DNA from: Thalia democratica
Taxonomy: Eukaryota
Length of the DNA: 64,000 bases
Direction of reading: 5' to 3'
NCBI GenBank assembly: GCA_965202585.1
Contig: OZ241831.1
Location: 13,082,001 to 13,146,000, forward strand
Positions 4,930-45,800 of this stretch are shown one piece after another. The position numbers and the translations under genes were made by a program. Below the pieces are notes generated by a model. The model worked only from the letters and a program-made list of their open reading frames with translations. It was not told where the DNA came from and did no database searches. How positions within the stretch are numbered: position 1 is the first letter of the stretch; the number at the start of each line of letters is the position of its first letter.

Positions 4930-5464
4930 AAACTAATAAGTTGCAACGGACAAACATTTTATATAGTTTTAGATAAGTAATTAGTTGATTAGGTGATTGG
5001 TTAACTAATTAAATTTTAGTAATATTCAGCAAGATAAATTATAATAAACGTAAATACAATTATAACAAAAATCAAACAACAAAACAAAACTATATAATGA
5101 AAACAAAGGTAGATTTAACTTAAATCTAGCAAATTAAGACTTTAGATAAAATTTTGTAAAATGTCTACATTTTCCCACCAGTTCTGATCTCAAGTTTAAA
5201 AGTTTTTTTTTATCTGCAAATGCGATTTCAAGTCTTTCCAAGTTACATAGGGTGCAAATTTTACTGGGCTTATTTTGGTTACTGCGATGAATAATTTCCC
5301 ATTTTATCATTTTTCTCCAATCAGGGTTGCATTTTTTTATTTTGTGAATGAATCTACTTAATCTTGTACTTTCTTTCTTCTTTACATTATTAAAGGATTG
5401 TATATGTTCGTAAAATCTACTTTTAAATTGTCTCCCAGTTGAACCAATGTAAATATATTCTTTA

Positions 5465-5993
5465 TGAATACAATAAGATTTCATATTCTTGCATGTCCAA
5501 TTTGGAAAAAGTATTGTCCAATCACAACCAGAAATTACTTCAAAACTCAAATGATACAACTGAAGAAAACCGCAAATTATGCAATTGTAGATCAAAAAAT
5601 AATTGTCCAGTTAAAGGTGAATGTCTTACTAAAGGAGTCATTTAAAAAGCAACAGTCATGTATAACAAAAAAGAACATATTTACATTGGTTCAACTGGGA
5701 GACAATTTAAAAGTAGATTTTACGAACATATACAATCCTTTAATAATGTAAAGAAGAAAGAAAGTACAAGATTAAGTAGATTCATTCACAAAATAAAAAA
5801 ATGCAACCCTGATTGGAGAAAAATGATAAAATGGGAAATTATTCATCGCAGTAACCAAAATAAGCCCAGTAAAATTTGCACCCTATGTAACTTGGAAAGA
5901 CTCGAAATCTAATTTGCAGATAAAAACAAACTTTTAAACTTGAGATCAGAACTGGTGGGAAAATGTAGACATTGTACAAAATTTTATTTAAAG
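5465..5993 (+). pseudogene. Penelope-like GIY-YIG endonuclease remnant (plus arm); second copy on minus strand at 5134-5463
   Basis: Translation SYSCMSNLEKVLSNHNQKLL...CNCRSKNNCPVKGECLTKGVI*KATV..YIGSTGRQFKSRFYEH with in-frame stops; matches ORF-track pieces 5439-5645, 5658-5912 and 5134-5595(-). Confidence 0.85.
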
Positions 5994-7785: not shown

Positions 7786-8028
7786 CAGTAGACTTCCTGT
7801 TCAATTCGCACTTTGAACAAAATAAAAAAGTTTTAACTCAAAAATTATTACCATTTTTTTACAAAATGATAAATTTAAATATTTTATATGCAATAACGTT
7901 ATGAATAAACATGAAATCAACTAAAACATAAAACAAACATTCAAAAAAAAAAAAAAAGATTTATATAAGCTATTAAATATTGTGTACTTTTTTGGGTAAA
8001 AAGTGCGAACTCAAGAGGAAGTCTACCG
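7786..8028. mobile_element. MITE with pogo/Tigger-like TIRs nested in the hAT element
   Basis: ~29-bp imperfect TIRs CAGTAGACTTCCTGTTCAATTCGCACTTT / CGGTAGACTTCCTCTTGAGTTCGCACTTT; TA on the right flank (left flank reads TG). Confidence 0.65.
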
Positions 8029-8161
8029 TAATTAACATTTCTTAGGCATTATGCAAACCTGTTAAAGAATAAACAACTTAAAAGAATTTTTTATATAAAA
8101 AGAATACATAATACAATACAAAGACTTAAAACAATACTAACCAGGTTAAACAAGAAGTATT

Positions 8162-8580
8162 TTAAAAAATCAAAAAAATAAAAAAAACTTTCATAAAATA
8201 ATTTCTGCTACTGAATTCTAATATAATGCGAAGGATGAGGTTCATGAATGCTTGCAAGTGTTTATAATCTGATTCTAAATCAGTCAAATAAAGCCTCAAG
8301 TCACCTCCTTTACAAATATTTAGATTAGATATTTTTCTCAAGATGTTGATAACTAAACTGAAAGCTTTCTCAACAACATAGCTAGAAGGAAAAACTATAC
8401 ACAACAATCTAATTTCCTCTCAATGATTGGATACTTTTGCCTTAGTTTTTGTTGAGTCCAAAAGCTTTCATTTCGTTCTTTGGAAACATTTACTTTGAGT
8501 TAAAGGTCAGTTTGTAAGTCCGAGAAGGTTTCCTGTGAGTCGTTTACTTCAAAAAGATCTGCCACGAAGGGATCCATATT
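8162..8580 (-). pseudogene. Decayed hAT (Buster/ZBED-like) transposase C-terminal remnant
   Basis: Minus-strand translation ...ESFWTQQKLRQKYP... then VFPSSYVVEKAFSLV...GGDLRLYLTDLE, typical of the hAT dimerisation region; contains stops and a frameshift. Confidence 0.8.
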
Positions 8581-9438
8581 TTTATCTATATGATAGCTTT
8601 TTTTTGTCAAATCGAAATTTTACTTAATATGTTGAAATTGTTAAAAATTCCAGATTAAAAATTTTTTTTTTGCCTAAATTATCAAATTCCAGGTTTTTCT
8701 AAGTAAATTGGCAACCCTGTATAGTTTTATTTCTTAGTCTAACTAAATGACTTTTTAAAAAACAATTGGAAACATCATGAGGTGATAGTTAATATAGATA
8801 AGATACATTTTTACAAACTATTTATGATCCTAAATAACATATATGTAAGGTAAAAAAATAGTGAAAAGAATTCCGATCGTCTATGATCTATGTAAGTGTT
8901 CAATAAGGAAATATACAATTGAAAATATGTAATTAACTTGAAAGTAGGAGTCATAAATACTTGATTTTTTTCTCTATATTTTACATAAACACAATAAACT
9001 TTTTTGTTTAAGTTTTACCACAGGGTCAAATATTTAACAGCAAGCTAAAATTAGTAAAATAAAAAGTAAAAATTCTATGACAACCCAAAATTTTAAAATC
9101 GCCCCCTTTTCGCCCCCTTACTAGTTATCGCCCACCCTTTCGCCCCCTTACTAATTATCGCCCCCCGAAATACTAAAATCGCCCCCAGGGGGGCGATATC
9201 GCCCACTTTGGGAAACCCTGATTTAAAGTCTTAATTTGCTAGATTTAAGTTAAATCTACCTTTGTTTTCATTATATAGTTTTGTTTTGTTGTTTGATTTT
9301 TGTTATAATTGTATTTACGTTTATTATAATTTATCTTGCTGAATATTACTGAAATTCAATTAGTTAACCAATCACCTAATCAACTAATTACTTATCTAAA
9401 ACTATATAAAATGTTTGTCCGTTGCAACTTATTAGTTT

Positions 9439-9494
9439 GTTTACTTTTACTTGTGATCATCGCACTAGCGTGAAACAATTGTTAAGTAATAAAC
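9439..9494 (+). ncRNA. Type I hammerhead ribozyme motif, G3-C8 core variant (PLE1 right arm)
   Basis: Stem I TTACTT/AAGTAA (plus GTTTA/TAAAC beyond a 3-nt bulge); core GUGAUCA; stem II U-CGC-ACUA-GCG-U; GAAA; palindromic helix III CAAUUG; predicted cleavage after GUU at 9483. Confidence 0.62.
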
Positions 9495-10519
9495 TTTTTA
9501 ACAATTTAACTTTTGTCATAATTGTTAAAGGCTCCTTAATTGTGAAGCTCTTTAAAAATCTATTGTTAAAACAACTTCAATAAAAACAAACAAACCTTTA
9601 TTTTTCAAACATTTTTTTGGGAAAGAAATTTTGTACACTATTTTTTATAACTTTCATTACTACAGTTAAAATTTCATATACAACGTACAGAAGGCGTGAA
9701 AACTTCTTTAAGAAATTCCGGCCCACGAAAGACTTCATATGGTGAATCTGGCTCGCCGACTAAAATTAATATCCACCACTAACTAATCGCAATATAACTA
9801 AGAATTGTTTTATAAAACACTTATAAGCTAGCTAACTTTATTTTTAAAATTTTTTAATTACTTATTTTTTTACCTTGAAAACACATCATTTTATCTAGTG
9901 TACCTTATTTCAACTTTTAATTGCTGCCAATGTTGCTTTAAAGTCTTTTTTTGAAATTCTAGAAAGAAACTACCGGTTTTTTTTTTGTTCGTATAAAATA
10001 TTGTACTCTGTTTTTTTAAGAAGAGCTAGAATAAACTTTAATTGAGATTGTACCCTTTCAAACATGCTCAAGTATTTTTTTACTGACAATTTAGACAGCG
10101 TTTATAGAGTTTTCACTGTAAAAGTTAATTCTGAAATCTATATAGTCCGAGGTATGTAAATGTTCCAATTTAAACTTAAACTGTTCTGCAACGCTCATTT
10201 TTAATTAAAATAGGGATCGGCAAACTGCGGCTCGCGGGCAATAAACATATTTTTACCCATAACCAGCTATCATATTCTTTTAATAGCATTTTGGTTAATT
10301 TGATGTTAATTTCCACCATATTGGAAAAGCCAAAAACCCACAAAGCATTTGCAGTACTTGCATACTAGAAAAGGTCGCGATCGTTAAAGCCGACAAAAGG
10401 GTTAACTTAAATAAACGGTACGAGCTCTTTTATTCCTGCCCGCACTTCAGAAAAATTCACTTTAAAACTTAAGTCTTAAGTTGTCCGTAATAAAGGTTTT
10501 ATGCATACTCTTAAAAAGT

Positions 10520-11230
10520 TTTTGTGTAGCTAATATTTTCTTGAATTTAAAAGTTTTTATAAAAATCATTCAAGCAAAATTTCAATTTTTCGTAGCTATT
10601 ACAAGTACAAAATTATCTAAATTTTCAATAGTTAAGTCACAATTAAAATTAGCTTTTTCAAAATGCATCTCATCTAAAACTCACTTTATACTATTAACTA
10701 CATTTTTGTTAAATCAATGTTTACTTTGAAAATAAACTAGAAGAAAAAAGAAAGCCACATATAGACTTTTTATTATTATTATTATTTGTGTTGGTTTTTA
10801 TTTTGAAACTTAAATTAAAATTTAAATTTTACCATAAATTCAATCTTAATATTAAAATTTAACATGTTTTTTTTTAAGTAAAAGTTTGTTTTTAATTAAA
10901 AGGTTTTATTAAAAAAGCATTCGGGCATTTTAAAAATTTTCATGGCTATTACAAGTACAAGATTATTTAAGTTTTCAATAGTTACGTCTTGATTAAAATA
11001 AGCTACGTTAAAATGCATCTCAACTTTAAGATCTATTAGTACTACTAGCTGCATTTTTAATTAAGCAATGTTTACTTCGAAAATTTAGTATAAGAAAAAA
11101 GAAAGCTACATACAGCTTTTATTATTATTCTTGTTGTTATATTGTTTTTAAAACTTAACTAAAATTTAAACTTTACCATAAATTAAATCTTGATATTAAA
11201 ATTTACTTTGTTTAGTTTTTAAGTAAAAAA
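10520..11230 (+). repeat. Two diverged tandem copies of a ~370-bp unit in the PLE2 tail
   Basis: Shared blocks GCTATTACAAGTACAA, TTTTCAATAGTTA.GTC, AAAATGCATCTCA, AAGAAAAAAAGAAAGC.ACATA, TTTACCATAAATT.AATCTT at ~370-bp spacing. Confidence 0.75.
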
Positions 11231-11300
11231 TTTGAGTAAAAATTTGATTTTATTTAATTGTTTAATTGCTATTTTCCATGAATGTTTCATATCTTTTTAG

Positions 11301-11351
11301 ATTTATTTAGCACTGACGAAGTTTGACCGAAACTTAGTTTGTAAAATAAAT
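11301..11351 (+). ncRNA. Minimal type I hammerhead ribozyme motif at the 3' end of PLE2
   Basis: Stem I ATTTATTTAGCA/TGTAAAATAAAT (11 of 12 pairs); CUGACGA core; 2-bp helix II within AGUUUGACC; GAAA; near-palindromic CUUAG helix III; GUU cleavage site at 11339. Confidence 0.62.
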
Positions 11352-12057
11352 TCTTGAAAGAATAAATTCATTATTTCTCTTCTATTAGTTGAGATCTCTT
11401 TATTTGTTTTCTTGAAAACAAAACATATAATACCATTTAATCATTTAAAAAATATTTTTTAAAGTTTTAAAGTTAATAATTTTTATAACAACATATTTTC
11501 AATTACCTTATTTCTTAAATGTGATACAACTTACCAAGTCATACACACAAATATATTCATTTAAGTTTAAGAAGTAGTATCTTAAGTTATGTACATTAAC
11601 AAAATTATTATATTTTAAATCTTTCTTAAGAAAACTGCATCACAATTTAATACAAAATTTAAACTCACTACAATGCAATTTAAACTGTATATGTTAGCTT
11701 TTTATGATTTAAGTTAAAAACGTACAAGTAATTTAAATCTGAATCTTGATGTCATTAAGTATTCCTTTTTTATTTTCAGTCTAAAAAAATATGCTTAGTC
11801 GTTATTTACTTAAAGTTTTAAAACTTGTTATAAAATCTGACAACTTATTTACAAATCTGAGCAAAACATAGTAAAATGATAGTTTACTGTCATATAGTAC
11901 ATAATAAAGAACTTACTAATAACCATTCAAATGTAAATAAAATCAGGTATTACCTACTTTTAACAAACGGCTTAGACACTTTGAACTTTTTGAGGCTAAT
12001 TTTGGAGCCCTTTAAGATGTTTGTTTTTAACCGATACAACTGTCCATCATGTATATG

Positions 12058-12099
12058 TCTACCTTATGAGTTCAGATAAGGACGAAAATAGGTTGCAGA
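12058..12099 (+). ncRNA. Degenerate hammerhead ribozyme relic
   Basis: TCTAC-CUUAUGA-GUUC-AGAUAA-GGAC-GAAA-AUAGGUU-GCAGA; helix II is intact and similar to the one at 27896, but G5 and helix III are mutated. Confidence 0.4.
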
Positions 12100-15000
12100 A
12101 CGTCACATTGACCGTTGTCGGTGGTCATGCGGTGCTGTATTGTGATTTTTGAGTAGTGGTGTGAAAACAACTCAGCATTGCTGTATTCAACCGGATTAAC
12201 TACTACCTTATAAACTTTATAGAAGATTGATAACAAGCTAGATAAATACAAGAAATGTCACAATCAACTAAACGCATTTTATAGACAAATATTAACTTAA
12301 CAAACTTGAAAAAACTTTTAACATTCTATGAAATAAAGTAGAGACTGTTTGACTTGTAGAATACAAATTTATTTAGTACTTACCAAACTTTATAATCCTA
12401 GAGACTGCTTTTAAATCACTATAAAAAATATTATTTGACAAATAAAAAGTCTGGTAACAAAATGAAATATACGATAAGTATTTTCACGGTTAGTGTAATA
12501 ATTTGATTTTAACATAAATTAAGTAGTTAACTATGGTTTCAGTTTTATTTTTATAGAAGTTGTTGTTCAGTAAGTTTAATACTTAAAAAGAAAAACTTTA
12601 AAAACTGAACAGAAGGCTAAAAAACCAAAAAGTAATTTGCTACTTCAGATTTAATGACAGTAATTATCACAGTTATTACTTATCAATTTAGTAACAAACA
12701 AAAATGTTTGATTAAATTTAAAAAATATTTTGGCAATTTAAAGAACGGGATTAAAGGTAAAAATTAACTTATTTAGAAAAAAAAAATTACAGTTTCTATA
12801 TAGTTTTATCACGTAAAGTAAAAAATGTTACTACCAATTAAAAAAAAATCTGTAGAGATTATCGATAAATAACAAGTTATATCAATGTGTAGCGAAAACT
12901 GTACTTACTTAAAAAAGGGTACAGTTAAGAAATAGACTATTTCACAGGTGCGTTTTTAGGACTATATGTATGAAACAAAATATTGTTAATTAATTTAGAA
13001 TAAAGGTAAAACTTTAGTATTTTTGATTAAGATTGGATGTAAACTCAAAGTTGTAGTTTAAGGTAAAATTGTATATTATCTGAAGCAAAGTATTGCTTAA
13101 ATTTTATTAGAATGATGATAACACTTTTAATAAACATACCTTGCAAGAAGGTATACCCTTTTTCTACAAACTTTAACACATTTTGACCAACTATAAAAAT
13201 GTTATAATATTTTAAACTTTTGTTAAGGACTTATTCAAACTATAGCAAAATTTATTCTTTACAAAATATTTAGTTAATACTAAAACAGCTATCGGAAAAT
13301 TTTGTTTGCGAAAGAAAGCTTTGAAAGTTATATAGTATTTTAGTCCAATATAAAGAGTGAAAAACCACAAATGCAACCCCGAATATTTTCATTTTTTAAA
13401 ATTGGCTCGCGACCACTAAATGCTTGCCGACCCCTAGTATAATGTAAAAAACATTAAAAAATCACTGTCACGGTACTTTTCGAAAAAACTGAAAAAAAAA
13501 CTTCGCAACAACAAAGTTTAATAAAATACTTTTAAAAATCTTAAAAAACTTAAGTCTAATTTTGTGCTTTGATGATAAGAAAAAGACTTGTTTGGTTTTT
13601 GTTGAGCTGGAGAACGTTTTCAAAATGTTTAAAAGTATTTTTATTCTTTGAAAAATAGGTACTGTTAATTTTTGTACGTTTTCAAATGAATACAACTTTA
13701 GATAGATTTAGGCTGTATTACTTTATATTTTGTTAACTGTTACTAAATTAACTTTTTTTAAATCATGTCTGAACCTATGATATCGAAATAGTAGTATGTA
13801 CTACTATTTTCGAGTTTAACAACCTGTAGATTTAATAAACTATATATTTGAATAAAATAAGTGAAATTTTAGTTGTGTTTTTCAAACAATTTTTTTTTTG
13901 TTTTATGATTACGTTTTAATAAATACAACGTATTTTTTCGGTCACAGTCATTGAAACAAACTCAGAGATCACTTAAGAAAAAATTTCACGATTTAGAAAT
14001 TGAAGAAAGATTTTGTATTACTTTTAGTTTAAACAAAAAAATAAAAGATCGTTTAAATGAACTAAAGCGCCTTACGTTAACATAAATCTTTCAAAAAGCT
14101 ATTACAACACTTTCTTTTGTTCTTGAATAAGCAGATTAAAAATGTTTTAATAAACGAAAGATCTCTTTCTAAGTGTTATGTTTAAAAAACTGAGAAAGTT
14201 TTATACAATGGTTTTTAATGAAACTTTGTTATTCAAGCTACTACAAGTTGTCAGATTCTTCTCTAAAAAAAGATGTAGAAAAAAATAAATTCTATTTAGA
14301 ACTAATACAAAGCAAAGGTTATCAGGGTTCGGCAGCCTTTTAAATCTAACAGATTAAAGAACATTATATCTTTGCCATTTTGCAAACTTTTAGCTTGATT
14401 TCAATTGTTATTTGAATTCGTTTTCTTTTCTTTGCTGTCGTATCCATTTTTAAATAAGGTAAAGTTAACAGTTTCAAAAGTATCTATCTTGCTTGCTAAA
14501 TCATAAAAGCTTCCAAATAAACATAAGAAACATTTTTTATTTACTGAGCCCGAAAACAAATAATGAACTATAACACTAAGTTTGAAAGAAATATTAGAAT
14601 GATGACGCGTAAATTGCTTGTTTAGTTATATAAATTATATTATGCATGTTTTTATAGTGAAACATTGATTTTCGCTGAATTGAATAAATCTACTTCCCAA
14701 CTAAAGCCGGCCGAATAATAGAAGCACAGTACTATAAAAATCAAAAATATGATAAAATAAGCAATAAAAATGAACTAGTAAAAGTTAATTGTTTATTTAA
14801 GAGTCTTATTATAAGTTTTTACCACAATTCGTTGAATCTATTGTTTTAAACAAGTAAATTTTTGGCTGGAAAGTACCTCACGGCCGCAGTTGCCGATCTC
14901 TTCGCTACATAGTTTCTGGCAAATGGTAACTAATGAAAGGGCGTTGTAGAACAGTTTAGTTTTTAAATTGATTACAAAATCTCGTACTATATAATTTTCG

Positions 15001-16020: not shown

Positions 16021-19000
16021 CTAACAAGTACGGAAGGTACATGAGTGAACTGATGGTGGACAGAAGTTCCATTTGCACATGAGTCTGAACGATGGACAGG
16101 TGAACTTGGCGTTACATTTGAAGCAGCAGCAGTAGTGCATGATCAATCTTGGCTCGTAGTAGTGGTGGAAGTAATCGAACTTTTCAATAATCTTCTTCAC
16201 TTTAGTGTCAACGCATTCGTGGTAGTGAGTTCTCAGGTTGAGTACGAGTTGGTTTGGGTTTTCACCGAAAACGCTGGAGAAGAACTTGTCAAAAGCAACC
16301 AAGTGGCAATGGGCACGCTGTAAAGAAGCAATATAGATAATTGACCTTAGTTTACTACTACATATGGTTTGTATTTCACATTTTAGGTTGAAGGTTTGTT
16401 GTAAAAGCCAGTAATAAAAAAATTACTTTAGAGTTCTAAAGTCTCGGTGTTAGTTGCTTAAGCTAACAATTAAAACAGAACTTGAACAAATTAAGAGTCC
16501 CTTGATATTGGGTTTTACATCAAACAATGTTTTGATTTTATAGGCTTGCATGCATATACGTAAACACCTTTCAAATTGATTTTTATTGAACATTAAATTC
16601 AAACTAACGTGGGTCAAAGTCTTGATGATGGCAGCACGTTGATGGACGCGTTTGTTGTAGAGTCCCTTGATGTAAGCGTCGATCTTTGACTGTCTGCCGG
16701 AAATGCACTGGTGGAAGTTGGCTTTCACTTTGTGGATCATCTGGTCAGCATGAGTTTTCCATTGCAAGATGCGAACGTGGACTCTTTCGTGGACGCACTC
16801 GATTTGGTGGAGCATCGACTCTTGGTGATGGTGGATCCATTCCTTAGCTTGAACCCTCAACAAATTGTGGAAGTTTTCAATTTCAGCTTGGGTTGGTGGG
16901 CATCTGAAATTAATAATATTTTTCTTAAAGTTAAAAAAAACTGTAATTTATTTTAAATATTACAAAACATTAAAAAAGTATATTAAAAGTAGCTTTCTAG
17001 TTATAAGTTGTTGTGTATTTAAAGTTAGGCCTTTCAAAAAATCTGCCAAAAAATACTAATTATAAACTAACATAAGTATATAATATCTAAGCTTTAAATT
17101 TTTATGTCAAAATGTAAATTCACTTTTTATATTGTTTAGTATTTGATCAAAGTCGTCTCTTAACATTTAATAAAAGAAAATATTTTTATTAGTAATAGGA
17201 CTGTTTTAATTTTTAATTTGTTAAGTATCAAATAAAGCTAAAAAGTAAACATACCCGTTGTATCCCTTTGGCATCTTGCAAACAATAAGTTCTTCAAGAC
17301 CAGTGATAGCAAAATGACACCATTCTTCAACTTGTTTCTTCCATGATCTGTATTTGTATGCGAGCTCTTGAGTGTATACGTTGCATTTTCTGTGAATTTC
17401 TTCTTCGTATTTCTTAGAATGGAACTCGCCACCGGATTCTTGTTCCTCTGTAAACACATTTTCGCTTTAAAATTGTCATTTTTACATATTTGAAGAGTTA
17501 ACATTAATGATAACGTTTAAAAATAAAAGCCTTATTATTTTGGTAAGAAAATATATTTCCTTTTTTTCTTTTCAAAAAACAAGCAGTACAATTTAACTTA
17601 CTCTTTGAACAAGTTTTGAGAGTTTTGTAAGCACATCCGTTCCATTCAGCTGAGAAAGCTCCAACACTACTGAGGTTAAACTTGCATTTTGGTGCAACTG
17701 GAAGATCACCACTAAAAAGGAAAAGTAATTATGACGTATTGAAAAGCAAAAAAAATACTTATTTTATTAAATTCATTTACCATTTTGATTGTTTTCTTAC
17801 AATGCTGTAGCAACCGTTCCTGAAGTAACAGACATAAGTACATCTGTAATCTTTTTCAACCATTTGTGCTGCTTGCATCACTTTAGTGTAGAAACCTTGG
17901 ACCAAAGTCTGATCGTATCTGACCATTTCTTCTTCCCATTGCTTAATTGCATCTTCAAATTCGGAAGGCATATCTTTGCCTTCTATAAATTTTTACACTG
18001 CTTAGTAAAACACATAAATTTTATTTTGATACACCTACTTATAGCTGTTTGTTAGTCGGAAAAGCTACGTATAATATTCTAGTTTAGATTAATAGTTTTT
18101 CTTGATGTAGATTTAATTAGCTAAAACTTTTAAAATTTTATAAACATATAAAATTCACTAACTGTAGATAGTAGCAAAGATGTGTCTGACGTAAGTAACT
18201 TTTCTAGAACGAAGTTTATCAAGTTTTTCATGGTAAACGTGGACATAATGTTGGGCACGTTCACCCATTTTACCGTGAATGCCACCGATTTGGTGTTGAC
18301 GCTTTTGGAGACATCCTTTTAACCTAATTTAGTTGATTCATGTTTGATTTTATGTTTTCTACAATTGTTCATGTTGTTTTTTAATTTTTTTTGTGGTTTT
18401 TGTGTTTTTGAGTGCCTAGCTTAAAATGTAGTAGTTGGGTATTTGTATATCATCTTATGTGATGACTAAAGTTTTTACTTAAACTCTTTTTATGAATATT
18501 CTGTTTTTGTACCTAAAACTAATCTGCTTCTTTGCAAGCGAATCACATATTAAAAATGGCAAACCTTATTTTTTGTAAGAAGTTATGCTTAATATAGTTT
18601 TACTTACTGATCAACAAGATGACAATGGTATTGCTCAATCTTTTGCATAATTTGTTGAACATTTCCGTTGTAGCGAGCAATACCCTGTTGTTTGTAACCT
18701 TCAAGCTCGTCGGAGTATTGTTTCAATCTACCTTCAAGTTCGGAGTATGCGCAGTTGGTAGCATGTTGGTAGTAATCTCTGAAGGTGCACACGTATTGGT
18801 GGTTCAAGTCCATGAGCATCTTGATCCATTGTTCTTGTCCTTGCATCAACTCACCGTAGATCTGTTGTCTGACATGGGCGAGCCTCTGTTCGATCTCACT
18901 GATTCTTCCAGCAGCGTTTTCCTCTGTGCAAAAAAAAAAAGTTACTTTTTTTGCTAAAGTGACTGTTTTTACTATTAAATTTGCTTGAAAAACAAGCATA

Positions 19001-25472: not shown

Positions 25473-25479
25473 TATAAAA
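25473..25479 (+). promoter_or_regulatory. TATA box of copy C
   Basis: TATAAAA at the same distance from the ATG (25546) as in B, D and E. Confidence 0.72.
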
Positions 25480-27854
25480 GTACAGACGAACTGACATTTG
25501 ACATCTATTGTTTGTTTGATTATAATAATACAGACAATCAAAAGTATGAAGATAGTCGCTGTCTTCTTAGCATGCATTGTTGTAAGTTTAAAATTTACCA
25601 CAAACAGTTTTGCTAATTTGCAAAGAATGATTATTTATAAAGGTCAAATACGATTCTTAACGCCCAACATTTATTTCAAAAGTTTATTAATTTTTATATA
25701 TCCTAGTACAAATTTAATCTTATTTAAAGTTGTAACATTTTAGGTATTCAGTTTAAATTGAGTTTCATAGCTAGTGATTAATTGACTTATAGACCTTAAG
25801 AATAAATATTATATACATCATTTAATATGTTGCCTGTTAATAAGTGTTAAGAATGATAATTTTATTTTCATTTTTCTTCTACTTATTTATTATTAAATAC
25901 TTAAATTGTTACCTCATACATATTGATTTATATGATTGGCTCATTAGCAAAAAACAAAATTTAAATATAAAAATTTTATGCTACTAAGATAATCTCAAAT
26001 AATATAGTCTTAAATTAATTTTATACTTTTCAGGCATCCCAAGGTGCAGTATTTAACATCCCAGATTACGATTACTGGTGCAATCAGAACTTCTGTGTTG
26101 TGCCACATCAAAGCTACTACAGTTACAAAGTCAACTTCAACCAAGCTTGGTGTCAGGGTCACTTCTACAGAGGCATCCTTTGCGAATTCCCAAAATGTTT
26201 CGAACCAAAAGGCTGTGAAGCTGGTTAGAATTTACGTGATTAAATACATCAAAACTTTCTCAGTCTTTAAAACCACATTGAAAGCTTTTAATTAATAAAG
26301 TAATATAGTTTTTTTATATACTTTTATTTTTAAATTTGTTCCAGTTAATAGGATATCTTGAACGTTTAAGTGAAAAAAGCCCATTATTTTGATTCAATTC
26401 TTGTTTTTCAAGCGCATTAAATGACAAAACGACATCATTAACAAATAAATAACTTAAGCTGTTTTTTTATAACAGAGGAAAACGCTCCCGGAAGAATTAG
26501 TGAGATCGAACAGAGGCTCGCTCATGTCAGACAACAGATCTACGGTGAGTTGATGCAAGGACAAGAACAATGGATCAAGATGCTCATGGACTTGAACCAC
26601 CAATACGTGTGCACCTTCAGAGATTACTACCAACATGCTACCAACTGCGCATACACCGAACTTGAAGGTAGATTGAAACAATACTCCGACGAGCTTGAAG
26701 GTTACAAACAACAGGGTATTGCTCGCTACAACGGAAATGTTCAACAAATTATGCAAAAGATTGAGCAATACCATTGTCATCTAGTTGATCAGTTAGTAAT
26801 GTGCTATTATAGGTTTTAAGCTTAAGTATATTTTAAAAAAGTATTATAGTTTAGAGCGTATAAAGCGTTTACAAAACAGCAACTAATTTTTTTATAAACC
26901 AGCAAACAATAATTCTATCTGTTTAAGTACAAGTAATTGAGCTATAATGTTGTTATGTTACAAAACTAATAATAAGTTGTAAGTTCCAGGTAAACATAGT
27001 TTTTGCATTTCAAAATAAATTATCGACATTGTTAAGTCTAGCTAAAACAAAATAACCAGGTTAAAAGGATGTCTCCAAAAGCGTCAACACCAAATCGGTG
27101 GAATTCACGGTAAAATGGGTGAACGTGCGTAACATTACGTCAACGCTTACCATGAAAAACTCGACAAACTTCGTACAAGAAAAACTACTTACGTCAGACA
27201 CATCTTTGCTACTATTTACAGTAAGTAGAATTGGTCATTTAACAAAAAAATAGAAATTCATGAAATTCTTGAGACTCTAGGTATATATTTAAGCATACAA
27301 CAAGTCATTAGATGGAGTTTTGACATACAAAATTTTCTTAACAGTACGTATACAGATTAATATAAAAGAACGTTTTAATTAAGCTTTGAAATAAATTATA
27401 GAAGGCAAAGATATGCCTTCCGAATTTGAAGATGCAGTTAAGCAATGGGAAGAAGAAATGGTCAGATACGACCAGACTTTGGTCCAAGGTTTCTACACTA
27501 AAGTGATGCAAGCAGCACAAATGGTTGAAAAAGATTACAGATGTACTTATGTCTGTTACTTCAGGAACGGTTGCTACAGCATCGTAAGAAAACAATCAAA
27601 ATGGTAAGATCAATTTAATAAAATTAACATTTATTTTGCTTTAAAATACGTCATATTTACTTTTTATTTTTAGCGGTGATCTTCCAGTTGCACCAAAATG
27701 CAAGTTTAACCTCAGTTTTGTTGGAGCTTTCTCTGCTGAATGGAACGGATGTGCTTACAAATCTCTTAAAACTTGTTCAAAGAGTAAATTTAGTTGTAAG
27801 GCTTAATTTTTTAATAAAATTTTAAAAATTAGAAAAATATTTCTAACCTAATTA

Positions 27855-28047
27855 AACTAACCTAAAAACTTTTTTCGGTTGTGACTGACTGATGAGTCCT
27901 AATAAGGACGAAACCGGTCTCAGTCTACCGAAACTTGTGGTCTGATGATCGAATTGGCATGATCAACCCTTTTGTTAAATTTGAGCTTGTCTCACGGCAA
28001 ACGAAAGTCCGGACTTGTTCTGCAGACTTTCGCCGATTTTGTTGATT
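27855..28047 (+). mobile_element. ~190-bp ribozyme-bearing insert (PLE pseudo-LTR or retrozyme-like fragment) replacing exon 7 of copy C
   Basis: Left flank aligns to intron 6 of A/B/D; right flank (TTATAAATAGGAATTTAGAAGCTCC) aligns to the 3' part of intron 7 of E; the middle is GC-richer and contains the hammerhead and a hairpin at 28002-28032. Boundaries are approximate. Confidence 0.6.
27883..27925 (+). ncRNA. Canonical type I hammerhead ribozyme with minimal palindromic helix III
   Basis: GACUGA-CUGAUGA-GUCC-UAAUAA-GGAC-GAAA-CCGG-UC-UCAGUC: perfect 6-bp stem I (extendable by UUCGGU/ACCGAA), 4-bp stem II, intact core, predicted GUC cleavage after 27919. Confidence 0.88.
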
Positions 28048-29201
28048 ACTTATAAATAGGAATTTAGAAGCTCCTTTGGAACTTTTTATTTTATTTTTTT
28101 GTAATAGAAAAAAAGGGAATATTAACTTGTTTTAGAGATCTAAAAGATATGTTACTAATTTCAGATGCCCACCAACCCAAGCTGAAATCGAAAACTTCCA
28201 CAATTTGTTGAGAGCTCAAGCCAAGGAATGGATCGACCTCCATCAACATAAAATGCTCCACCAAATCGAGTGCGTCCACGAAAGAGTCCACGTTCGCATC
28301 TTGCAATGGAAAACTCATGCTGACCAGATGATCCACAAAGTGAAAGCTAACTTCCACCAGTGCATGTCCGGCAGACAGTCAAAGATCGACGCTTACATCA
28401 AGGGACTCTACAACAAACGCGTCCATCAACGTGCTGCCATCATCAAGACTTTGACCCATGTTAGTTGGAGTTTAATGTTCAATAAAATCAATTTGAAAGG
28501 TGTTTTATAAAATTAATTTTAGTGTGTTTTTTGTATTAGCATGCAAGACTCTAAAACCAAAGCATAATATAATGCAAAATTGAATATAAAGTAGATCCTA
28601 AGTTGTTCAAATAAACTTTTAAGAATTAACTTGAATAATTTATAACAAGGCTACAGAAGTCTAAAATTGATTTTTATTACTTTCCTTTAGAATTAAAAAA
28701 ATATCTAGTTAATCGAAAATGTTAAGTATAAATTTCATCTTATTGTTGACTAAAAACTACATTCAAAATCTAAAGCGTGCCCATTGCCACTTGGTTTCTT
28801 TCGACAAGTTCTTCTCCAGCGTTTTTGGTGAAAATCCAAACCAACTCGTTCTCAACCTGAGAACTCACTACCACGAATGCGTTGACACTAAAGTGAAGAA
28901 GATTATTGAAAAGTTCGATTACTTCCACCACTACTACGAGCCAAGATTGATCAAGCACTACTGCTGCTGCTTCAAATGTAACGCCAAGTTCACCTGTCCA
29001 TCGTTCAGACTCATGTGCAAATGGAACTTCTGTCCACCATCAGTTCACTCGTGTACCTTCCGTACTTGTTAGGTAAATATTTGTGTATTTTATATTTAAA
29101 GACTTTACCAAACGATATAACAAAGTTAGGTATAAATTTCATAAGATTAAAAAATGACTTATATTTTCTTAAATGAAGTTATAACAATTTTTATCTTGCA
29201 G

Positions 29202-29257
29202 GTGGTTACAGAGAGGAAATGGATCGCTTTAACTTCAAAAAAAATGAAAAAAAATAA
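29202..29257 (+). other. Terminal exon 10 of copy C (diverged)
   Basis: CTTGCAG acceptor; alignable to 3628-3671 via GATCGCTT.AACTTCAAA. Confidence 0.6.
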
Positions 29258-29939
29258 ATTGGTGTTTACTAATAAACTTCTTAAAAAAATTGTGCTTCTT
29301 TTTTTATGTAACAGTCTACATTAAATCAATCTATGCATTGAAAAGTCAGATAAAGTATGTGATTTACCCATTTACAATAAATAAACAGCACATTGTAGTT
29401 CTTAAATCTTAGAAGAACTTGTAGTTTAATTTAAGTCAATAAAAAAAGCAACACAGATTACATATCAATAAGAAAAGTTTATCAAACAATAGTGGTAGGA
29501 TTCGGCAGTATTTTAGAGTGAACTAGGCAAATGTAATAAAAAATTATCTATTCAACCGGATATTTTTAGAGTTATAACAGGCCAATATACGTTTTGAAAC
29601 TTTAAAAAAATAACTTAAATTACTAGATAAAATTTGTTGTAATCAATCAAAAAGCGAAACTTTTTACTCTATATTAAATTAATATAAAACTTTTAAATCC
29701 TTTTCATAAAATCATTAAATTTTCTTGAATTTTTTCAACTAAAAAATACGTAGCAGACTTCATGTTGCTTGCAGACCGTACTTGTTGAAACGAATTGCTT
29801 GATTCACAAATTAATCGAGCGTGACATTTGCCCAAAACTATTATTACTTGAGTAAATAAAAACACCACTTAAATAAAACTTTGAAATACAATATACTAAA
29901 GTTATGATGTAACAAAATGTATATTTTGTTGTTTTTAAA

Positions 29940-34730: not shown

Positions 34731-35297
34731 CAGAATGACACAGCGACAAAATGACACGGTCGTCAAATAGACACGGTGCGTCACTTTGGCACAGCGACAA
34801 AATGACACGGTGCGTCACCTTGGCACAGTGCGTCAGTTTGGCACGGAGGGTCACTTTGGCACGGCGACAAAATGACACGGTGCGTCACTTTGGCACAGAG
34901 GGTCACTTTGGCACGGCGACAAGATGACACGGTGCGTCACTTTGGCACAGCGACAAAATGACACGGTGCGTCACCTCGGCACGGTGCGTCACTTTGGCAC
35001 AGAGGGTCACTTTGGCACGGCGACAAAATGACACGGTGCGTCACTTTGGCACAGAGGGTTACTTTGGCACGGCGACAAAATGACACGGTGCGTCACTTTG
35101 GCACAGAGGGTCACTTTGGCACAGCGACAAAACGACACGGTGCGTCACTTTGGCACGGAGGGTCACTTTGGCACAGCGACAAAACGACACGGTGCGTCAC
35201 TTTGGCACGGAGGGTCACTTTGGCACAGCGACAAAATGACACGGTGCGTCACTTTGGCACAGAGGGTCACTTTGGCACAGCGACAAAATGACACGGT
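34731..35297 (+). repeat. Left modular repeat array built from 16- and 18-nt modules (AGCGACAAAATGACAC, GGTGCGTCACTTTGGCAC, RGAGGGTCACTTTGGCAC)
   Basis: Read directly; composite 34- and 52-nt units. Confidence 0.95.
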
Positions 35298-37110
35298 GGT
35301 TAATAAGGGAGGGAACGATTTGTTGTTAAACTTCAACCTTTATTGGTATGGACAACGATCTTATTTTTCTAGGAAACTTTTCGGTTTCCTGTCTTCTAAC
35401 CGGTTTTGTAGAATCAGCAACAATCACATTGATTAACTTTAAAAACAAAGACCGCAGGAATTTTTGATCGTGACTTCATAAAATAAAGTGAAACACGTAA
35501 TGTTTATACCTTCTATTCTCATCGTCGTACTTATAAAAAACATGCTCGTTTTTAAGCAATAGCAAGGTGTTAGGTGTGCTTAAAAGCTGTGCTTAATAAA
35601 CAACAACTAGTTGTTTATACCACACAACGTTCACAAAGATGCAAAAGCAGCAATTTTTTTAACAAAATACGACTGCCAAAATTAACGAAAATTTATTTTT
35701 GATTACTTTTGAATGGAAAATCTTAAACACAGTTTAGTACTAGAACTTGAAACGAGTAATAAAAATTAGAAAATGACTTGCCATTTTACGACTAAAAAGA
35801 TAAAAACTCATATAAACATATTATTTAAACTTCAGCAACATTCTGATTTAAAAAATACAATCTTCATTTTAGATCAATTATTCAGTACATCAAAACAATA
35901 AACTAGTAGATGTAAATGCAGAGGAAAATTTGTTTTATAAACTAAAACTCAGACTTTATCGAAAGCAACTTTTCTGCTGTTGTAATTCTAAATTCTAATG
36001 CGTTTCTTATTTTACGTTTTTATGCTTAAAAAATTAATACTTGCGCTACTTTGGCGACTTAATAGGTTGCAAAATTAAAAATAGAAAATTAAATATTATT
36101 TTCATAACAGAGTTAAGACAAAACCGAGATTTTTAAAACTTTGTAATAAAACTCAAGAATAGAAAGTAGAAGAAATGTTTTACACGCAAATTAAAATCTG
36201 CTTTTACTGTATCATTATGAAATTTATTTACTGATTTTGTATTATATAAATACAATTAAATCCTTATATGCAATAAAATACTATAATATCTGTCATACTC
36301 TAAGTTTATTTTTTTATATTTTAGACTAAAAAGTTTTGTAAAAATAAAAAAGACTTAAAGTATTAATAGAATAGAAAACTTTAATAGAATGGCTGCAGCT
36401 TTAATTAGAAGGCTGCAGCAGCAATGTTGTATGTATAACCTCTTCTAGTGATTTTTTTTTAAAGTGATAAATATATAAATGCGCATGAATGGTTGCATCA
36501 GACTCTTAATTTTCTTTCAACTGTTCATAATACTATTTTTAACTTTTTCATAAATATAGGCTCCAGGTCCGTTTATTTTAATTATTTGCTTTCAGACAAG
36601 TTTATTACATATTTTCAATACAGAATTTTAAGTAAACATCCTAACTTATTAACTTTTGTTAATTATAAATATATATACATATTTAATATAAATGGCTAGT
36701 TACTACAAAAGCAGCTTAACTCTGTATTTTTAAAAACTACAGTTAAAACACGCATGACTTATTCTTACTACAAAATAACTCTGTATTAATTTAAATCTTA
36801 GTTATTTTTTTAAACAATTCCTGAAATAATTAATTAAACTTAACAACAAAAAATACTAAATTTTATTCATTACATAAATATGAAAAGTCGTGAAACGTAA
36901 AAAACAAACTTAAGAAATTTATGTTTTTATACTATGACTTTAATTTTAAAGCAATGTAACATATATAGTTTCAAATGTATCAAGCTACTATAGTTTGGAA
37001 AAAGTATAATAAATCTTTTATTTAACTAATTACTATCAAAATTTTACAATTAAAAGTTATATTACTGAAGAAGTTTAGTTTTGCATATACGTTTGTTAAT
37101 CCATGCTATC

Positions 37111-37686
37111 GTGACGCACCGTGTCATTTAGTCGCTGTGTCAAAGTGACGTATCGTGTCATTTTGACGCTGTGCCAAAGTGACGCACCGTGTCATTTTGT
37201 CGCTGTGCCAAAGTGACCCTCAGTGCCTAAGTGACGCACCATATCATTTTGTCGCTGTGCCAAAGTGACCCTCCGTGCCAAAGTGACGCACCGTGTCGCT
37301 TTGTCGCTGTGCCAAAGTGACCCTCCGTGCCAAAGTGACGCACCGTGTCGCTTTGTCGCTGTGCCAAAGTGACCCTATGTGCAAAATTGACGCACCATGT
37401 CATTTTGTCGCTGTGCCAAAGTGACGCACCATGTCATTTAGTCGCCGTGCCAAAGTGACCCTCCGTGCCAAAGTGACACACTGTGCCAAGGTGACGCACC
37501 GTGTCATTTTGTCGCTGTGCCAAAGTGACGCACCGTGCCAGAGTGACGCACCGTGTCATTTTGTCGCTGTGCCAAAGTGACGCACCGTGTCATTTTGTCG
37601 CCGTGCCAAAGTGACCCTCCGTGTCGAAGTGACGCACCGTGCCAAAGTGACGCACCGTGTCATTTTGTCGCTGTGTCATTCTGACA
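37111..37686 (-). repeat. Right modular repeat array (reverse complement of the left array modules, different module order)
   Basis: GTGCCAAAGTGACGCACCGTGTCATTTTGTCGCT and GTGCCAAAGTGACCCTCC units. Confidence 0.95.
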
Positions 37687-40600
37687 CCCACCCCATAAAC
37701 TCAAGTTTAATCCTTTGCAGTAGCTTAGCTTTGTTTTTATTTTATTTTTACAATAGCTTGTAGAGTATATGATACTTAAGCATGTCCTGTTTTAGGGAAT
37801 TTTCAACTTAGCTTACTTACCGCAGGATATTGATTTTGCGGTAATTCTTGAAGAAATTTTGCTTTTTTGAGTTCATTTGCGGCAGTCAGCTAAGAGTTTG
37901 CGGCAGTGAAGTGGGCAAAATGGTCGTTTTCTAAATTGGAGTTTTAAAAGAGATTTCGTTTTAAAAAATAACGAAAGTATTATAGATACTTAATTTTTTC
38001 CTTACCAAATTTCCAGGTGGTGCAGTTGCGGCAGTGCAACACCCCACGCGACGCCCCTGGTTCCTACCTCAGGCCCTGGAGGACTACAATAAAAAGATTA
38101 AACCTTTATATTAGGCAGGAATCAGCAAAGTGCGGCCTGGGAAAAAAAAAACAGAGTTATATGGCCTTCGACGTGCTTTAAAGCTTTCAAACAATATTTA
38201 AGTTGTATGAAAACTATTTTAAGACTTCTTTGATAAAAATTTTTAAATTATCTTTAAAAATTAAATGTGATTAAACAACAAGGTTCACAAACTAGCATCT
38301 AAGTTTTATTTTTTTTTATTAGTAAATCATTTTTAAACACGACGGCCTATAGGCCATACCTGACATAGTTGCAAAAGTCTAAAACTTATACTTAACAAAA
38401 AATTAATTACTAAAGCCTTTTTAAAGTGTTTCAACATTTTTTAGCTTATTACTTTCAACGCAAAATACTTATTAATAACAAAACATTACCAGATTAAGTT
38501 GTCAAGTGATATTTAGCTAACTGATTATTTTTCAAAATTGGTTTTTAATAAAAAGAAATGGTTTAAAAACAAAAAAAAAGTCATTTTGATAATCAAGCTA
38601 GATTTAGCGTACATAATAGGATAAAAATAAAACAAACCTTCATTTTTTAAACATTTTTTTGGACAAGAAATGTTGGAAACTATTTTTTATAACTGTCATC
38701 ATTACAGTCAAAATTGTATAGGCAAAGTACAGATGGCGTGAAAAAATCATTTAAAAAATTTTTGCCCATGCAAGACTTCATATGGTGAAACTGGCTCGCC
38801 GACTAAAAATAATATCAGCCCCTAACAAAACGCAATATAACTAAGAACTAATTTATAAAATACTTGTAAGCTAGTTAGCTTTATTTTAAGAAATTTAAAG
38901 TTACTTAATTTATTTACTCTGAAAACACAATTTTATCTAGTGTACCTTAATTTAATTTTTAATTGCTGCCAATTTCGCTTTAAAGTATTTTTTTGGAAGC
39001 TCTAGAAAAAAAGAACTGGTTTTCTTTTGTTTGTATAAAATTGTATACTCTGTTTTTTTCAAGAAGAGTTAAAATAAAATTTAATATAGATTGTAGCCTT
39101 TAAAATATATTCAAGTGTTTTTTACTGACAATTTTGACAGCGTGTATAGAGTTTTTATCGTTTAAAGTAGTTCTGAAAACTATAAAGCCCGAGGTGTGTA
39201 TATGTTTTGATTTAAAGTTAAACTGTTCTGCAACGCATATTTTTAATTGAGATAGAGATCGGCAAACTGCGGCCCGCGGGCCAAATACATATTTTTACCC
39301 ATAACCAGCTGTTATATTCTTTTATTAGCTTTTTTGTTAATTTGATGATAATATATAAAATTTTAAGTCATTAAAAAAAAAATTCTGCAATTAAAAACTA
39401 TGCAAAGCTGTTTTCAATTGCTTGTCATTGAAATTTTCTTTCCTAAGTTGTTCATCCAGTATATTTTATTAACCACGACTGAAAAAACATGTTGCACTTA
39501 TAACTATAAAATACTATACTATACTAACTTTGCTTAACTAAAAAAATTATTATTTGACAGATAAAAAGTCTGGTAACAAAAAAATATACGATAAGTATTT
39601 TTACGGTAAGTGTAGTAACTTGATTTTAACATAAACTAAGTAGTTAAATATGGTTTTATTTTTATAGAAGTTGTTGTTTAGTAAGTTTAATATTTAAAAA
39701 GAAAAACTTTAAAAAACTGAACAGAAGGCTAAAAATCAAAAAGTATATTGCTACTTCAGATCTATTGACAGTAATTATCACAGTTATTACTTATCAATAA
39801 AGTAACAAACAAAAAATGTTTGATTAAATTTAAAAATCATTTTAGCATTTAAAAGAACGGGATTAAAAGTAAAATTTAACTCATTTAGAAAAAAAAATAC
39901 AGGTTCTATATATTTCTATCACTTAAAGTCTTAGTAGAAAATTTTAATAACACTTAAAAAAAAATTCTGTAGAGATTATAGATAAATAACAAGTTATATC
40001 AATGTGTAGCGAAAACTATGCTAACTTAAAAAAGGTTACAGTTAAGAAGTAGACTATTTCACAGGTGCGTTTTTAAGACTATATGTATGAAAAAAAATAT
40101 TGTTAATTAATTTAGAATAAAGGGAAAACTTTATTGTTTTTGATAGGATTGGCTATAAATTCAAAGTTGCAGTTTAAGGTAAAATTGTATACTATCTGAA
40201 GCACAATACTGCTTAAATTTTATTAGTGATAACAATTTTAACACTTTTAATAAACATACCTTGCAAGAAGGTATACCCTTTTTCTTACAACCTAACAACA
40301 AATTTTAATAAAATACGTTTTAAAATCTTTGAAAACTTAAGTCTAATTTTGTGCTTACGAATGATGATAAGAAAAAGAATTGTTTGGTTTTTGTTGAGCT
40401 AGAGAACGTTTTCAAAATGTTTAAAAGTATGTTTATTCTTTGAAAAATAGGTACTGTTAATTTTTGTACGTTTTGAAATGAATATAACTTTAGATAGATT
40501 TAGGCTGTATTACTTTGTATTTTGTTAACTGTTACTAAATTAACTTTTTATTAAATCATGTCTGATTCTATGATATCGAAATAGTATGTACTACTATTTT

Positions 40601-42833: not shown

Positions 42834-45800
42834 CTAACAAGTACGGAAGGTACATGAGTGAACTGATGGTGGACAGAAGTTCCATTTGCACATGAGTCTG
42901 AACGATGGACAGGTGAACTTGGCGTTACATTTGAAGCAGCAGCAGTAGTGCATGATCAATCTTGGCTCGTAGTAGTGGTGGAAGTAATCGAACTTTTCAA
43001 TAATCTTCTTCACTTTAGTGTCAACGCATTCGTGGTAGTGAGTTCTCAGGTTGAGAACAAGTTGGTTTGGGTTTTCACCGAAAACGCTGGAGAAGAACTT
43101 GTCAAAAGCAACCAAGTGGCAATGGGCACGCTTTAGATTTTGAATGTATATTTAGTTTGTGTTTACCAAGTATGATAGTCTATAAACTTCATTATATATT
43201 AAAAATATATTTTTTGTAAGTTTTTTAATGAGAAAATTTTATTAATCATTTTAAAGTTCTAGGAGTCTATTCGTGCACTATTTTTTGAACAAAATAGTCG
43301 ATACTATAAACTACATAAAAAAAAAAATACTGCCTATAAAATAACTTTTTTTAAATCTGAAAAATGTCGTTATCAATAAAAAAATAAATAGAGATATTTG
43401 AAAGCTATTGTAAATTCAAACTAACGTGGGTCAAAGTCTTGATGATGGCAGCACGTTGATGGACACGTTTGTTGTAGAGTCCCTTGATGTAAGCGTCGAT
43501 CTTTGACTGTCTGCCGGACATGCACTGGTGGAAGTTGGCTTTCACTTTGTGGATCATCTGGTCAGCATGAGTTTTCCATTGCAAGATGCGAACGTGAACT
43601 CTTTCGTGGACGCACTCGATTTGGTGGAGCATTTTATGTTGATGGAGGTCGATCCATTCCTTGGCTTGAGCCCTCAACAAATTGTGGAAGTTTTCAATTT
43701 CAGCTTGAGTCGGTGGGCATCTGAAATTGATAAATTTTTTCTATGCAACTAGTATACTATGATCCATTACTATAATCATAATATTAGAGACGGGACTGTT
43801 AAGTAGCTTTTAAACTCATAATTTTAAGCTTTTTTCGTTTAGTGTTTCATACAAAATTAGTTAGACAAAACAAAACTTGCTATTTTACCTAACTTCTATT
43901 CTAACACATAAAATCATGATTTAAAGTTCATATTTTTTTATAAAAACAGAGTAATTATATTTTTACTTTACTTTTGTGTTGGATCAAACTTGTTTCATAA
44001 CCGTTCTCTAACAAAACTTTTCTATATTTAGTTGTTCGATAGATCTTCTTTTATAAACTTTAGTTTCTTAAACACAAAAAAAAAGTTATAAACATACCCG
44101 TTGTATCCCTTTGGCATCTTGCAAACAATAAGTTCTTCAAGACCAGTGATAGCAAAATGGCACCATTCTTCAACTTGCTTCTTCCATGATCTGTATTTGT
44201 ATGCGAGCTCTTGAGTGTATACGTTGCATTTTCTGTGAATTTCTTCTTCGTATTTCTCAGAATGGAACTCGCCACCGGATTCTTGTTCCTCTGTAATTAC
44301 ATTTTCGCTTTAAAATTGTTATTTTTACATTTTTACATATTTAAAGAGTTAACATTAATGATAAAGTTTAAAAATAAAAACTTTATTAAATTAGTAAAAA
44401 AAATATTTTTTCCTTTTTTTCTTTTAAAAAACAAGCACTACAATTTAACTTACTCTTCGAACAAGTTTTAAGAGTTTTGTATGCACATCCGTTCCATTCA
44501 GCTGAGAAAGCTCCAACACTACTGAGGTTAAACTTGCATTTTGGTGCAACTGGAAGATCACCGCTAAAAAGAAAAAGTATTTATGACGTTTTGAAAAGTA
44601 AAATAAATACTTATTTTATTAAACTGATCTTACCATTTTGATTGTTTTCTTACAATGCTGTAGCAACCGTTTCTGAAGTAACAGACATAAGTACATCTGT
44701 AATCTTTTTCAACCATTTGTGCTGCTTGCATCACTTTAGTGTAGAAACCTTGGACCAAAGTCTGATCGTATCTGACCATTTCTTCTTCCCATTGCTTAAT
44801 TGCATCTTCAAATTCGGAAGGCATATCTTTGCCTTCTATAAATTTTTACACAGCTTAGTAAAACACATAGATTTTTTTTTGATACACCTACTTAAAGCTG
44901 TTTGTTAGTCGGAAAAGCTACGTATAATATTCTAGTTTAGACTAATAGTTTTTCATGTTGTAGATTTAATTAGCTAAAACTTATACAAAATATTATATAA
45001 ATATAAAATTCACTAACTGTAGATAGTAGCAAAGATGTGTCTGACGTAAGTAATTTTTCTAGAACGAAGTTTATCAAGTTTTTCATGGTAAACGTTGACG
45101 TAATGATGGGCACGTTCACCCATTTTACCATGAATGCCACCGATTTGGTGTTGACGCTTTTGAAGACATCCTTTTAACCTAATTTAGTTGATTCGTGTTT
45201 GATTTTATGTTTTCTACAATTGTTCATGTTGTTTTTTAAATTTTTTTTTGTGTTTTCGAGTGCTTAGCTTAAAATGTAGTAGTTTGATATTTGTATATCA
45301 TCTTATGTGATGACTAAAGTTTTAACTTTAACTTTTTCAATGAATTTTCTGTTTCTATACTTAAAATTAATCTGCTTCTTTGCAAGCAAATCACATACTA
45401 AAAATAAACGTTTTTTTCAAAAAAATTATGCTTTATATTATTTTACTTACTGGTCAACAAGATGACAATGGTATTGCTCAATCTTTTGCATAATTTGATG
45501 AACATTTCCGTTGTAGCGAGCAATACCCTGTTGTTTGTAACCTTCAAGCTCGTCGGAGTATTGTTTCAATCTACCTTCAAGTTCGGAGTATGCGCAGTTG
45601 GTAGCATGTTGGTAGTAATCTCTGAAGGTGCACACGTATTGGTGGTTCAAGTCCATGAGCATCTTGATCCATTGTTCTTGTCCTTGCATCAACTCACCGT
45701 AGATCTGTTGTCTGACATGGGCGAGTCTCTGTTCGATCTCACTGATTCTTCCGGCGGCGTTTTCCTCTGTTACAAAAAAAAAACTTGAGTTATTTATTTG

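Follow-up and report, generated by a model that had tools for sequence, protein, structure and literature searches.

Repeats of the retrozyme type have been reported to be depleted from genes and introns, and, to our knowledge, the mechanism of Penelope-type integration is not established. L1 retrotransposition in mammals is reportedly associated with deletions of target DNA, as Gilbert et al. and Symer et al. are said to have described in 2002. Intronic hammerheads of the HH9 and HH10 type are conserved in amniotes, where cleavage or regulation of transcripts has been proposed for them. Tandem hammerhead repeats of the size described here are animal non-LTR retrozymes (PMC7229834), and retrozymes are derived from Penelope-like elements (PMC7229834; bioRxiv 10.64898/2026.07.22.740005). 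Penelope-like elements themselves occur as tandem or inverted copies with a one-sided tail (PMC8557442), and their pseudo-LTRs carry hammerheads (PMC4209133). A hammerhead with an unstable helix III (1-2 bp and a palindromic loop) is hindered in its self-cleavage when it stands alone, and an active dimer can arise from two copies close to each other (PMC4209133). Satellite hammerheads of newt and axolotl likewise cleave poorly as monomers and well as dimers, and axolotl units with exactly such a helix III show weak cleavage as monomers and much better cleavage as dimers (PMC7229834).

Here we describe a hammerhead within a short stretch of foreign DNA that stands in place of exon 7 in one of three tandem gene copies (copy C), in a 64-kb stretch of DNA that was analysed as a whole (the window). 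Positions 27871-28047 probably represent a very young, 5′-truncated, single-arm retrocopy of a 328-bp retrozyme in a dead paralog, with a hammerhead that is not used by the host. The element class has already been described, and the insert is a typical representative of it.

Hammerhead motif

A perfect-core type I hammerhead occupies positions 27883-27925 on the + strand, where all of its parts can be read directly. Together with an extended helix I, the ribozyme covers 27873-27933 (+), as given by direct reading and by the Rfam HH9 alignment over 27871-27941. The outer part of helix I, taken from the HH9 alignment, pairs 27873-27878 with 27928-27933 (6 bp), and an internal loop, UUGU at 27879-27882 opposite UA at 27926-27927, separates it from the inner part, in which GACUGA (27883-27888) pairs with UCAGUC (27920-27925) over another 6 bp. 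The first core strand, CUGAUGA, lies at 27889-27895 and is followed by helix II, a 4-bp stem of GUCC (27896-27899) and GGAC (27906-27909) that starts with the G10.1-C11.1 pair and encloses a 6-nt loop 2 (27900-27905). The second core strand, GAA, lies at 27910-27912. Helix III, the palindrome ACCGGU at 27913-27918, consists of a single pair between A15.1 (27913) and U16.1 (27918), capped by palindromic CCGG. By its base pairing, ACCGGU would need a second hammerhead copy to form a helix of 6 bp, and an energy calculation gives −8.3 kcal/mol for the self-duplex. The conserved core aligns to the HH9 consensus, and there are three helices with the open end in helix I, the arrangement that defines type I. 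The initial annotation had described this motif as a type I hammerhead with a perfect core, sense-oriented and with cleavage predicted after 27919. Both readings hold, as all parts lie on the + strand, which is also the strand of the gene, and C17 falls at 27919, with the predicted cleavage site between 27919 and 27920.

HH9 is the best match in Rfam; over the 451 bases searched it reaches 38.8 bits (E = 1.8e-8), short of the gathering score of 52. The motif scores under the gathering threshold of every Rfam hammerhead family, and a gathering scan of the whole window was empty. The HH9 alignment spans the full motif with five helix III model positions deleted, and this deletion is the main reason for the shortfall in score. 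A strict hammerhead pattern matched once in the 64-kb window, compared to 0.01 matches expected from shuffles. Thermodynamic folding of the monomer and the dimer returned alternative pairings as the minimum-energy structures, and not the catalytic fold. It is usual for the catalytic fold of a hammerhead to be missing from the minimum-energy structure, and this says little about activity.

Parent repeat family

A genome-wide search with 27855-28047, as proposed in the initial annotation, identified the parent of the insert as a 328-bp tandem repeat with at least 1207 first-look candidates. Dozens of the genome matches are 100% identical over 27871-28047 only, which shows that the repeat starts at 27871. 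Compared with a reference unit U (L012:1501-1828, 328 bp), the insert (27871-28047, + strand) is a partial retrozyme copy of 177 bases that corresponds to U1-177, agrees with it at 177 of 177 positions and ends at the canonical 3′ tail; it makes up 54% of one unit. Its GC content is 43.5%, compared to about 27-33% in the surroundings. The exact 43-nt hammerhead core is found in 629 copies in the genome and the internal unit-unit junction in 484 exact copies, while HH9-like motifs number about 33,500 as rough first-look candidates.

Head-to-tail arrays at 328-bp spacing are present on many chromosomes (e.g. L008-L015, L003-L006). The unit has a GC content of 43.3%, the longest ORF starting with ATG in three units is 47 aa, and the circular monomer folds well below shuffled controls (z = −3.9). 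Classified by its sequence, the 328-bp repeat is an animal non-LTR retrozyme with one type I hammerhead per unit. The family consists of head-to-tail units within the size range of about 150-450 bp that characterizes retrozyme arrays, each with a hammerhead, and the window copy is a partial single unit.

Several further observations were made on the unit. In one array unit (L012:790-830), helix II has changed from GUCC/GGAC to AUCC/GGAU, together with a change in loop 2; judged by the pairing, the double change in helix II is compensatory and preserves the hammerhead helix. The non-ribozyme half of the unit, at U about 240-305 (e.g. L012:1740-1805), contains a perfect TGACGTCA palindrome, which is CRE-like, and the sequence GATAAA is located in the same half, about 30 nt before helix I of the hammerhead. 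The TGACGTCA palindrome and the TATA-like GATAAA may together constitute an internal promoter. We considered U position 1 as a fixed RNA 5′ end, with a start downstream of these two motifs, and dropped this candidate because the heads spread over 30 nt. At 12 head-to-head loci the heads lie no more than 30 nt from U position 1, a number that fits random truncation with correlated arms. A spliced-leader remnant before 27871 was also rejected, the bases shared by two loci being chance A-rich extensions at inverted-arm junctions.

Insertion architecture of the family

We mapped U onto 30 loci and then read the insertion ends. Most insertions consist of two head-to-head inverted arms, each of which is 5′-truncated at a variable point, as in L028:1386-1677, L020:1501-1796 and L007:1388-1682. 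The ends of the two arms differ, with one at U175-184 (...GTTGATT) and the other at U101-110 (...TTTTGTTAAA), and thirteen loci besides the window copy end within U175-184. Whole insertions are flanked by target duplications of 7-13 bp, including AGGAACGA in L028, CTTCCCA in L007, TGTTTTC in L018, 10 bp in L002 and 13 bp in L003. One-armed copies with target duplications also exist (L026, L019).

The family shows 5′ truncation, an inverted partner, a one-sided tail and variable duplications, which are the characteristics of Penelope-type insertion. The offset of roughly 70 nt between the two arm ends looks like the one-sided tail of Penelope-like elements. Taken together, the insertion architecture and the literature suggest that the 328-bp family is a non-autonomous repeat mobilized in the fashion of Penelope. 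Both arm ends (U175-184, U101-110) come after a TTTTGTT motif (L002-L030), and this motif may mark the start of reverse transcription.

Host gene and its relatives

The window contains three + strand gene copies (1, C and 3) spaced about 25.9 kb apart, a segmental triplication, and two − strand relatives lie between them, at 17211-17460 (-) and 44088-44322 (-). At least 12 exon-7 homologues were found in the genome, on both strands; they are located within the window, upstream of it, on the unplaced contig C129 (4 matches) and at C10:20732942-20743760 (80% identity). The encoded protein is secreted-looking and coiled-coil-rich with Cys-rich ends, and a Pfam search with six host-gene exon translations gave nothing near any threshold. 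Two short tandem repeat arrays, at 34761-35350 and 37067-37706, are located between gene copies and have an alternating 18/34-bp spacing with a 52-bp super-period.

Parts of 26400-29100 were found in marine or seawater metagenome and metatranscriptome runs (22 runs from several studies), and transcription of some part of this region, be it paralog exons or the repeat, is probable. Contig C129 was considered as the other haplotype and rejected: it is 86-96% identical, as a diverged paralogous cluster, and ends before the relevant exon 7.

Window junctions and the lost segment

The three gene copies were aligned three-way, and exon 7 was sought in copy C by local search of 25900-29400. Copy C tracks its sisters to ...AACCT (27863), continues with seven filler bases and U1-177, and rejoins them at ACTTATAAATAGG (28048). 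The filler, AAAAACT (27864-27870, +), lies between the paralog-derived intron 6 and the repeat and matches neither source. At the replaced segment the sister copies have 536-549 bp; in copy 3 coordinates, the segment absent from copy C is 53427-53962 (+), 536 bp made up of exon 7 with 84 nt from intron 6 before it and 259 nt from intron 7 after it. Exon 7 spans 53511-53703 (+, 193 nt) in a splice-site-consistent model of the intact copy 3 and was located by local search at 2034-2226 (+) in the intact copy 1, and neither the local search nor the three-copy alignment found it in copy C.

Exon 6 of copy C (27674-27783, +) aligns without gaps to its counterpart in copy 3, and exon 8, identified by local search, lies at 28165-28459 (+). 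Between them is a hybrid intron of 381 nt (27784-28164, +) composed of the 5′ part of intron 6, the insert and the 3′ part of intron 7. It carries the hammerhead in the sense orientation, and both its GT donor at 27784 and its CAG acceptor at 28164 are intact. The exon model of copy 3 gives phase 1 for intron 6 and phase 2 for intron 7. Because exon 7 has 193 nt, direct splicing of exon 6 onto exon 8 would put exon 8 out of frame, with a TGA at 28209-28211. Copy C also has a premature stop TAA in exon 4 (27130-27132, +), where copies 1 and 3 have CAA. As predicted from these exon models, copy C is a pseudogene with two lesions, the frameshifting loss of exon 7 and the nonsense codon in exon 4.

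These results refine several claims of the initial annotation about the locus. It had described an insert of ~190 bp that replaced most of intron 6, all of exon 7 and most of intron 7. The segment is indeed foreign, with its size corrected to 184 bp (7 filler bases and 177 repeat bases); all of exon 7 and most of intron 7 (259 of 377 nt) are gone, whereas the loss from intron 6 amounts to about half (84 of 169 nt) and not to most of it. The promoter of copy C had been called intact, and at the sequence level this is borne out: the TATA box (25473-25480), 5′ UTR and exon 1 (together 25473-25582, +), with the ATG at 25546, a signal-peptide-like MKIVAVFLACIV and the donor GTAAGT, match copy 3. 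An insertion-associated deletion had also been held to have disabled the paralog; the loss of exon 7 is disabling, but, given the TAA at 27130 as a second lesion, it does not follow that the insertion was the disabling cause.

Besides the TAA, the private exon changes amount to 8 non-synonymous and 20 synonymous in copy C and to 8 and 14, respectively, in copy 3; this similarity suggests that the pseudogene is recent. The zero divergence of the insert likewise indicates a recent insertion. The genome search with 27855-28047 found no other insert copy near the gene cluster, which places the insertion after the segmental duplication. The 3′ part of intron 3 in copy C (26969-27060), just upstream of the stop-bearing exon, is unrelated to copies 1 and 3, and by comparison with these copies it is a further private rearrangement of copy C. 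The junctions are known from one assembly, and exact scans of metagenome contigs for the left and the right junction gave 0 matches each.

When its junctions were compared with the sister copies, the window copy had no second arm and no target duplication. The right junction lies exactly at the family's canonical tail, U177, which argues for regular priming and not for random capture. At the left junction, the filler holds AAAAAC, which is the G+TTTTT head of the unit in reverse complement; L007, L020 and L028 have it at their inverted arms. This AAAAAC is possibly a 6-nt stub of an inverted arm that was aborted or deleted.

Expected ribozyme activity

The strict pattern found no second (partner) hammerhead in the 64-kb window. 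Since the motif is alone and has a one-pair helix III, inefficient cleavage is predicted, and the lone hammerhead in the copy C pre-mRNA would be expected to cleave poorly in cis, if at all. The suggestion that the copy C pre-mRNA might cleave itself appears weakly founded on this comparison, as little or no cleavage has been published for single motifs of the type. The link drawn earlier between hammerheads with a palindromic helix III, Penelope-like elements or retrozymes, and dimer-favoured cleavage agrees with the published descriptions (PMC4209133, PMC7229834). A hammerhead-like motif is also present at 9439-9494 of the window; its core reads GUGAUCA compared to CUGAUGA, a swap of G3-C8, and its helix III is the palindrome ACAAUUGU. 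No ORF longer than 153 aa was found in 5000-14500, the region around this motif.

It is conceivable, and in our view highly doubtful, that RNA supplied in abundance by hundreds of retrozyme units of identical sequence could pair in trans, through the same ACCGGU, with the lone hammerhead and bring about cleavage of the pre-mRNA at 27919/27920. If this were true, solo sense-strand retrozyme fragments in genes would be retrozyme-dependent sites at which transcripts are cut, and this could explain the reported under-representation of such elements in introns.

Origin of the insert

The events that would give rise to the window copy can be outlined from the two junctions. Reverse transcription would have been primed on a nicked target in intron 7 at the family's normal 3′ tail, and the other end would have been joined through the 7 filler bases to a point in intron 6 located 536 bp upstream, with the loss of exon 7. 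Insertion and deletion as one event is plausible from the junction sequences, and we lean slightly towards the target DNA having been lost during integration or during repair of the same break; alternatively, a later deletion with its break in the middle of the inverted repeat of the element could have removed it. The hammerhead would be sequence-perfect owing to the youth of the copy and not to its use by the host.

The later deletion deserves consideration as a history of two events, which we regard as possible and on balance unlikely. An ordinary two-armed insertion of ~290 bp, of the L028/L007 type, would have entered intron 7, and a deletion of ~630 bp from the centre of the inverted repeat would subsequently have removed exon 7 and part of intron 6 together with the short arm and the target duplication. 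The centre of an inverted repeat is a fragile place, and 7 nt separate the left breakpoint from the retained arm's head; the AAAAAC there corresponds to the first bases of the inverted arm in L007, L020 and L028. The two-armed form is also that of most other insertions; however, one-armed insertions are normal in the family as well (L026, L019). Furthermore, two steps are needed where one would suffice, and the 0 changes in the 177 bases of the insert leave little time for a second event.

A capture independent of endonuclease, in which about 0.5 kb was resected at a double-strand break and the gap closed by retrozyme cDNA or by filler templated on RNA, is improbable. Endonuclease-independent L1 insertions have no target duplication, a target deletion and untemplated junction bases, and the window copy resembles them in its missing target duplication, its target deletion and, at one of its junctions, the 7 bases that look untemplated. 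However, the insert terminates at its 3′ end exactly on the canonical tail, shared with 13 other loci, as regular priming predicts.

We also considered an assembly artefact, in which exon 7 would really be present and a repeat fragment would have been mis-joined in a repeat-rich tandem cluster. The locus does lie in a 25.9-kb segmental triplication, and Penelope-type inverted structures trouble assemblies (PMC8557442). Nevertheless, the window is free of N, both junctions are sharp to the single base and the right one falls at the canonical tail, copy-specific substitutions are present in both flanks, and any long read would greatly exceed the 184-bp insert in length, all of which makes such an error very improbable. 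Finally, a domesticated intronic ribozyme, kept by the host to cleave or regulate copy C transcripts, would fit the sense orientation, the intact splice sites and promoter region and HH9 as the best Rfam match, but is extremely unlikely for a hammerhead whose 629 exact copies in the genome mark it as very recent, which is absent from the sister paralogs, which sits in a host copy with a nonsense codon and a frameshifting exon loss, and which as a lone motif of such a type would be a poor self-cleaver (PMC4209133).

Significance and comparison with known systems

Read as a young retrocopy, the locus offers a clean and datable case of a hammerhead retrozyme damaging a gene, with a canonical 3′ junction, no duplication and a 536-bp loss that includes an exon. 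It shows what Penelope-type integration can do to its target and bears on the reported depletion of such repeats from genes. Its value is modest, as the element belongs to a known class, the host family has at least 12 copies and there is an additional stop codon of independent origin in the affected copy.

The intronic HH9 and HH10 hammerheads of amniotes (Rfam RF02275) resemble the window motif in being type I, in having an internal loop in helix I and in lying in an intron in the sense orientation. They differ in that the window motif scores 38.8 compared to 52 bits with five helix III positions deleted, and belongs to a fresh repeat copy in a pseudogene. Furthermore, the window hammerhead is not conserved at the paralogous intron: copies 1 and 3 lack it, as do all the other paralogs that were found. 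The target deletions of mammalian L1 are similar to the locus in their normal 3′ junction, the lack of a duplication, the loss of hundreds of bp at the 5′ junction and the few filler bases, although L1 is a retroelement of another class. Newt and axolotl satellite hammerheads (HHR_Amex1 type; PMC7229834, citing Forster et al. 1988) have the same one-pair helix III and palindromic tetraloop; they belong to another animal lineage and another repeat sequence.

Penelope-like elements (PMC4209133, PMC8557442) share with the 328-bp family 5′ truncation, partial tandems, an adjacent inverted 5′-truncated copy, variable target duplications and a palindromic helix III. Their tail, at one end only, has a counterpart here in the stretch of about 70 nt that separates the U~106 end from the U~177 end. 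In contrast, no reverse transcriptase or GIY-YIG ORF accompanies the 328-bp unit in the loci read, and the hammerhead of Penelope-like elements is a stripped-down minimal variant, whereas that of the 328-bp unit is the canonical metazoan form with a 6-bp helix I, a 4-bp helix II and loop contacts.

Animal non-LTR retrozymes (Cervera and de la Pena 2020, PMC7229834) differ from the window copy in that the latter is without the promoter-side half and without a second ribozyme, which makes release of a monomer or circle impossible. The 328-bp family as a whole agrees with them in its few-hundred-bp, head-to-tail, non-coding repeats with GC below 50%, in the single type I hammerhead in each of many near-identical copies, in the target duplications and in the stable predicted fold of the monomer.
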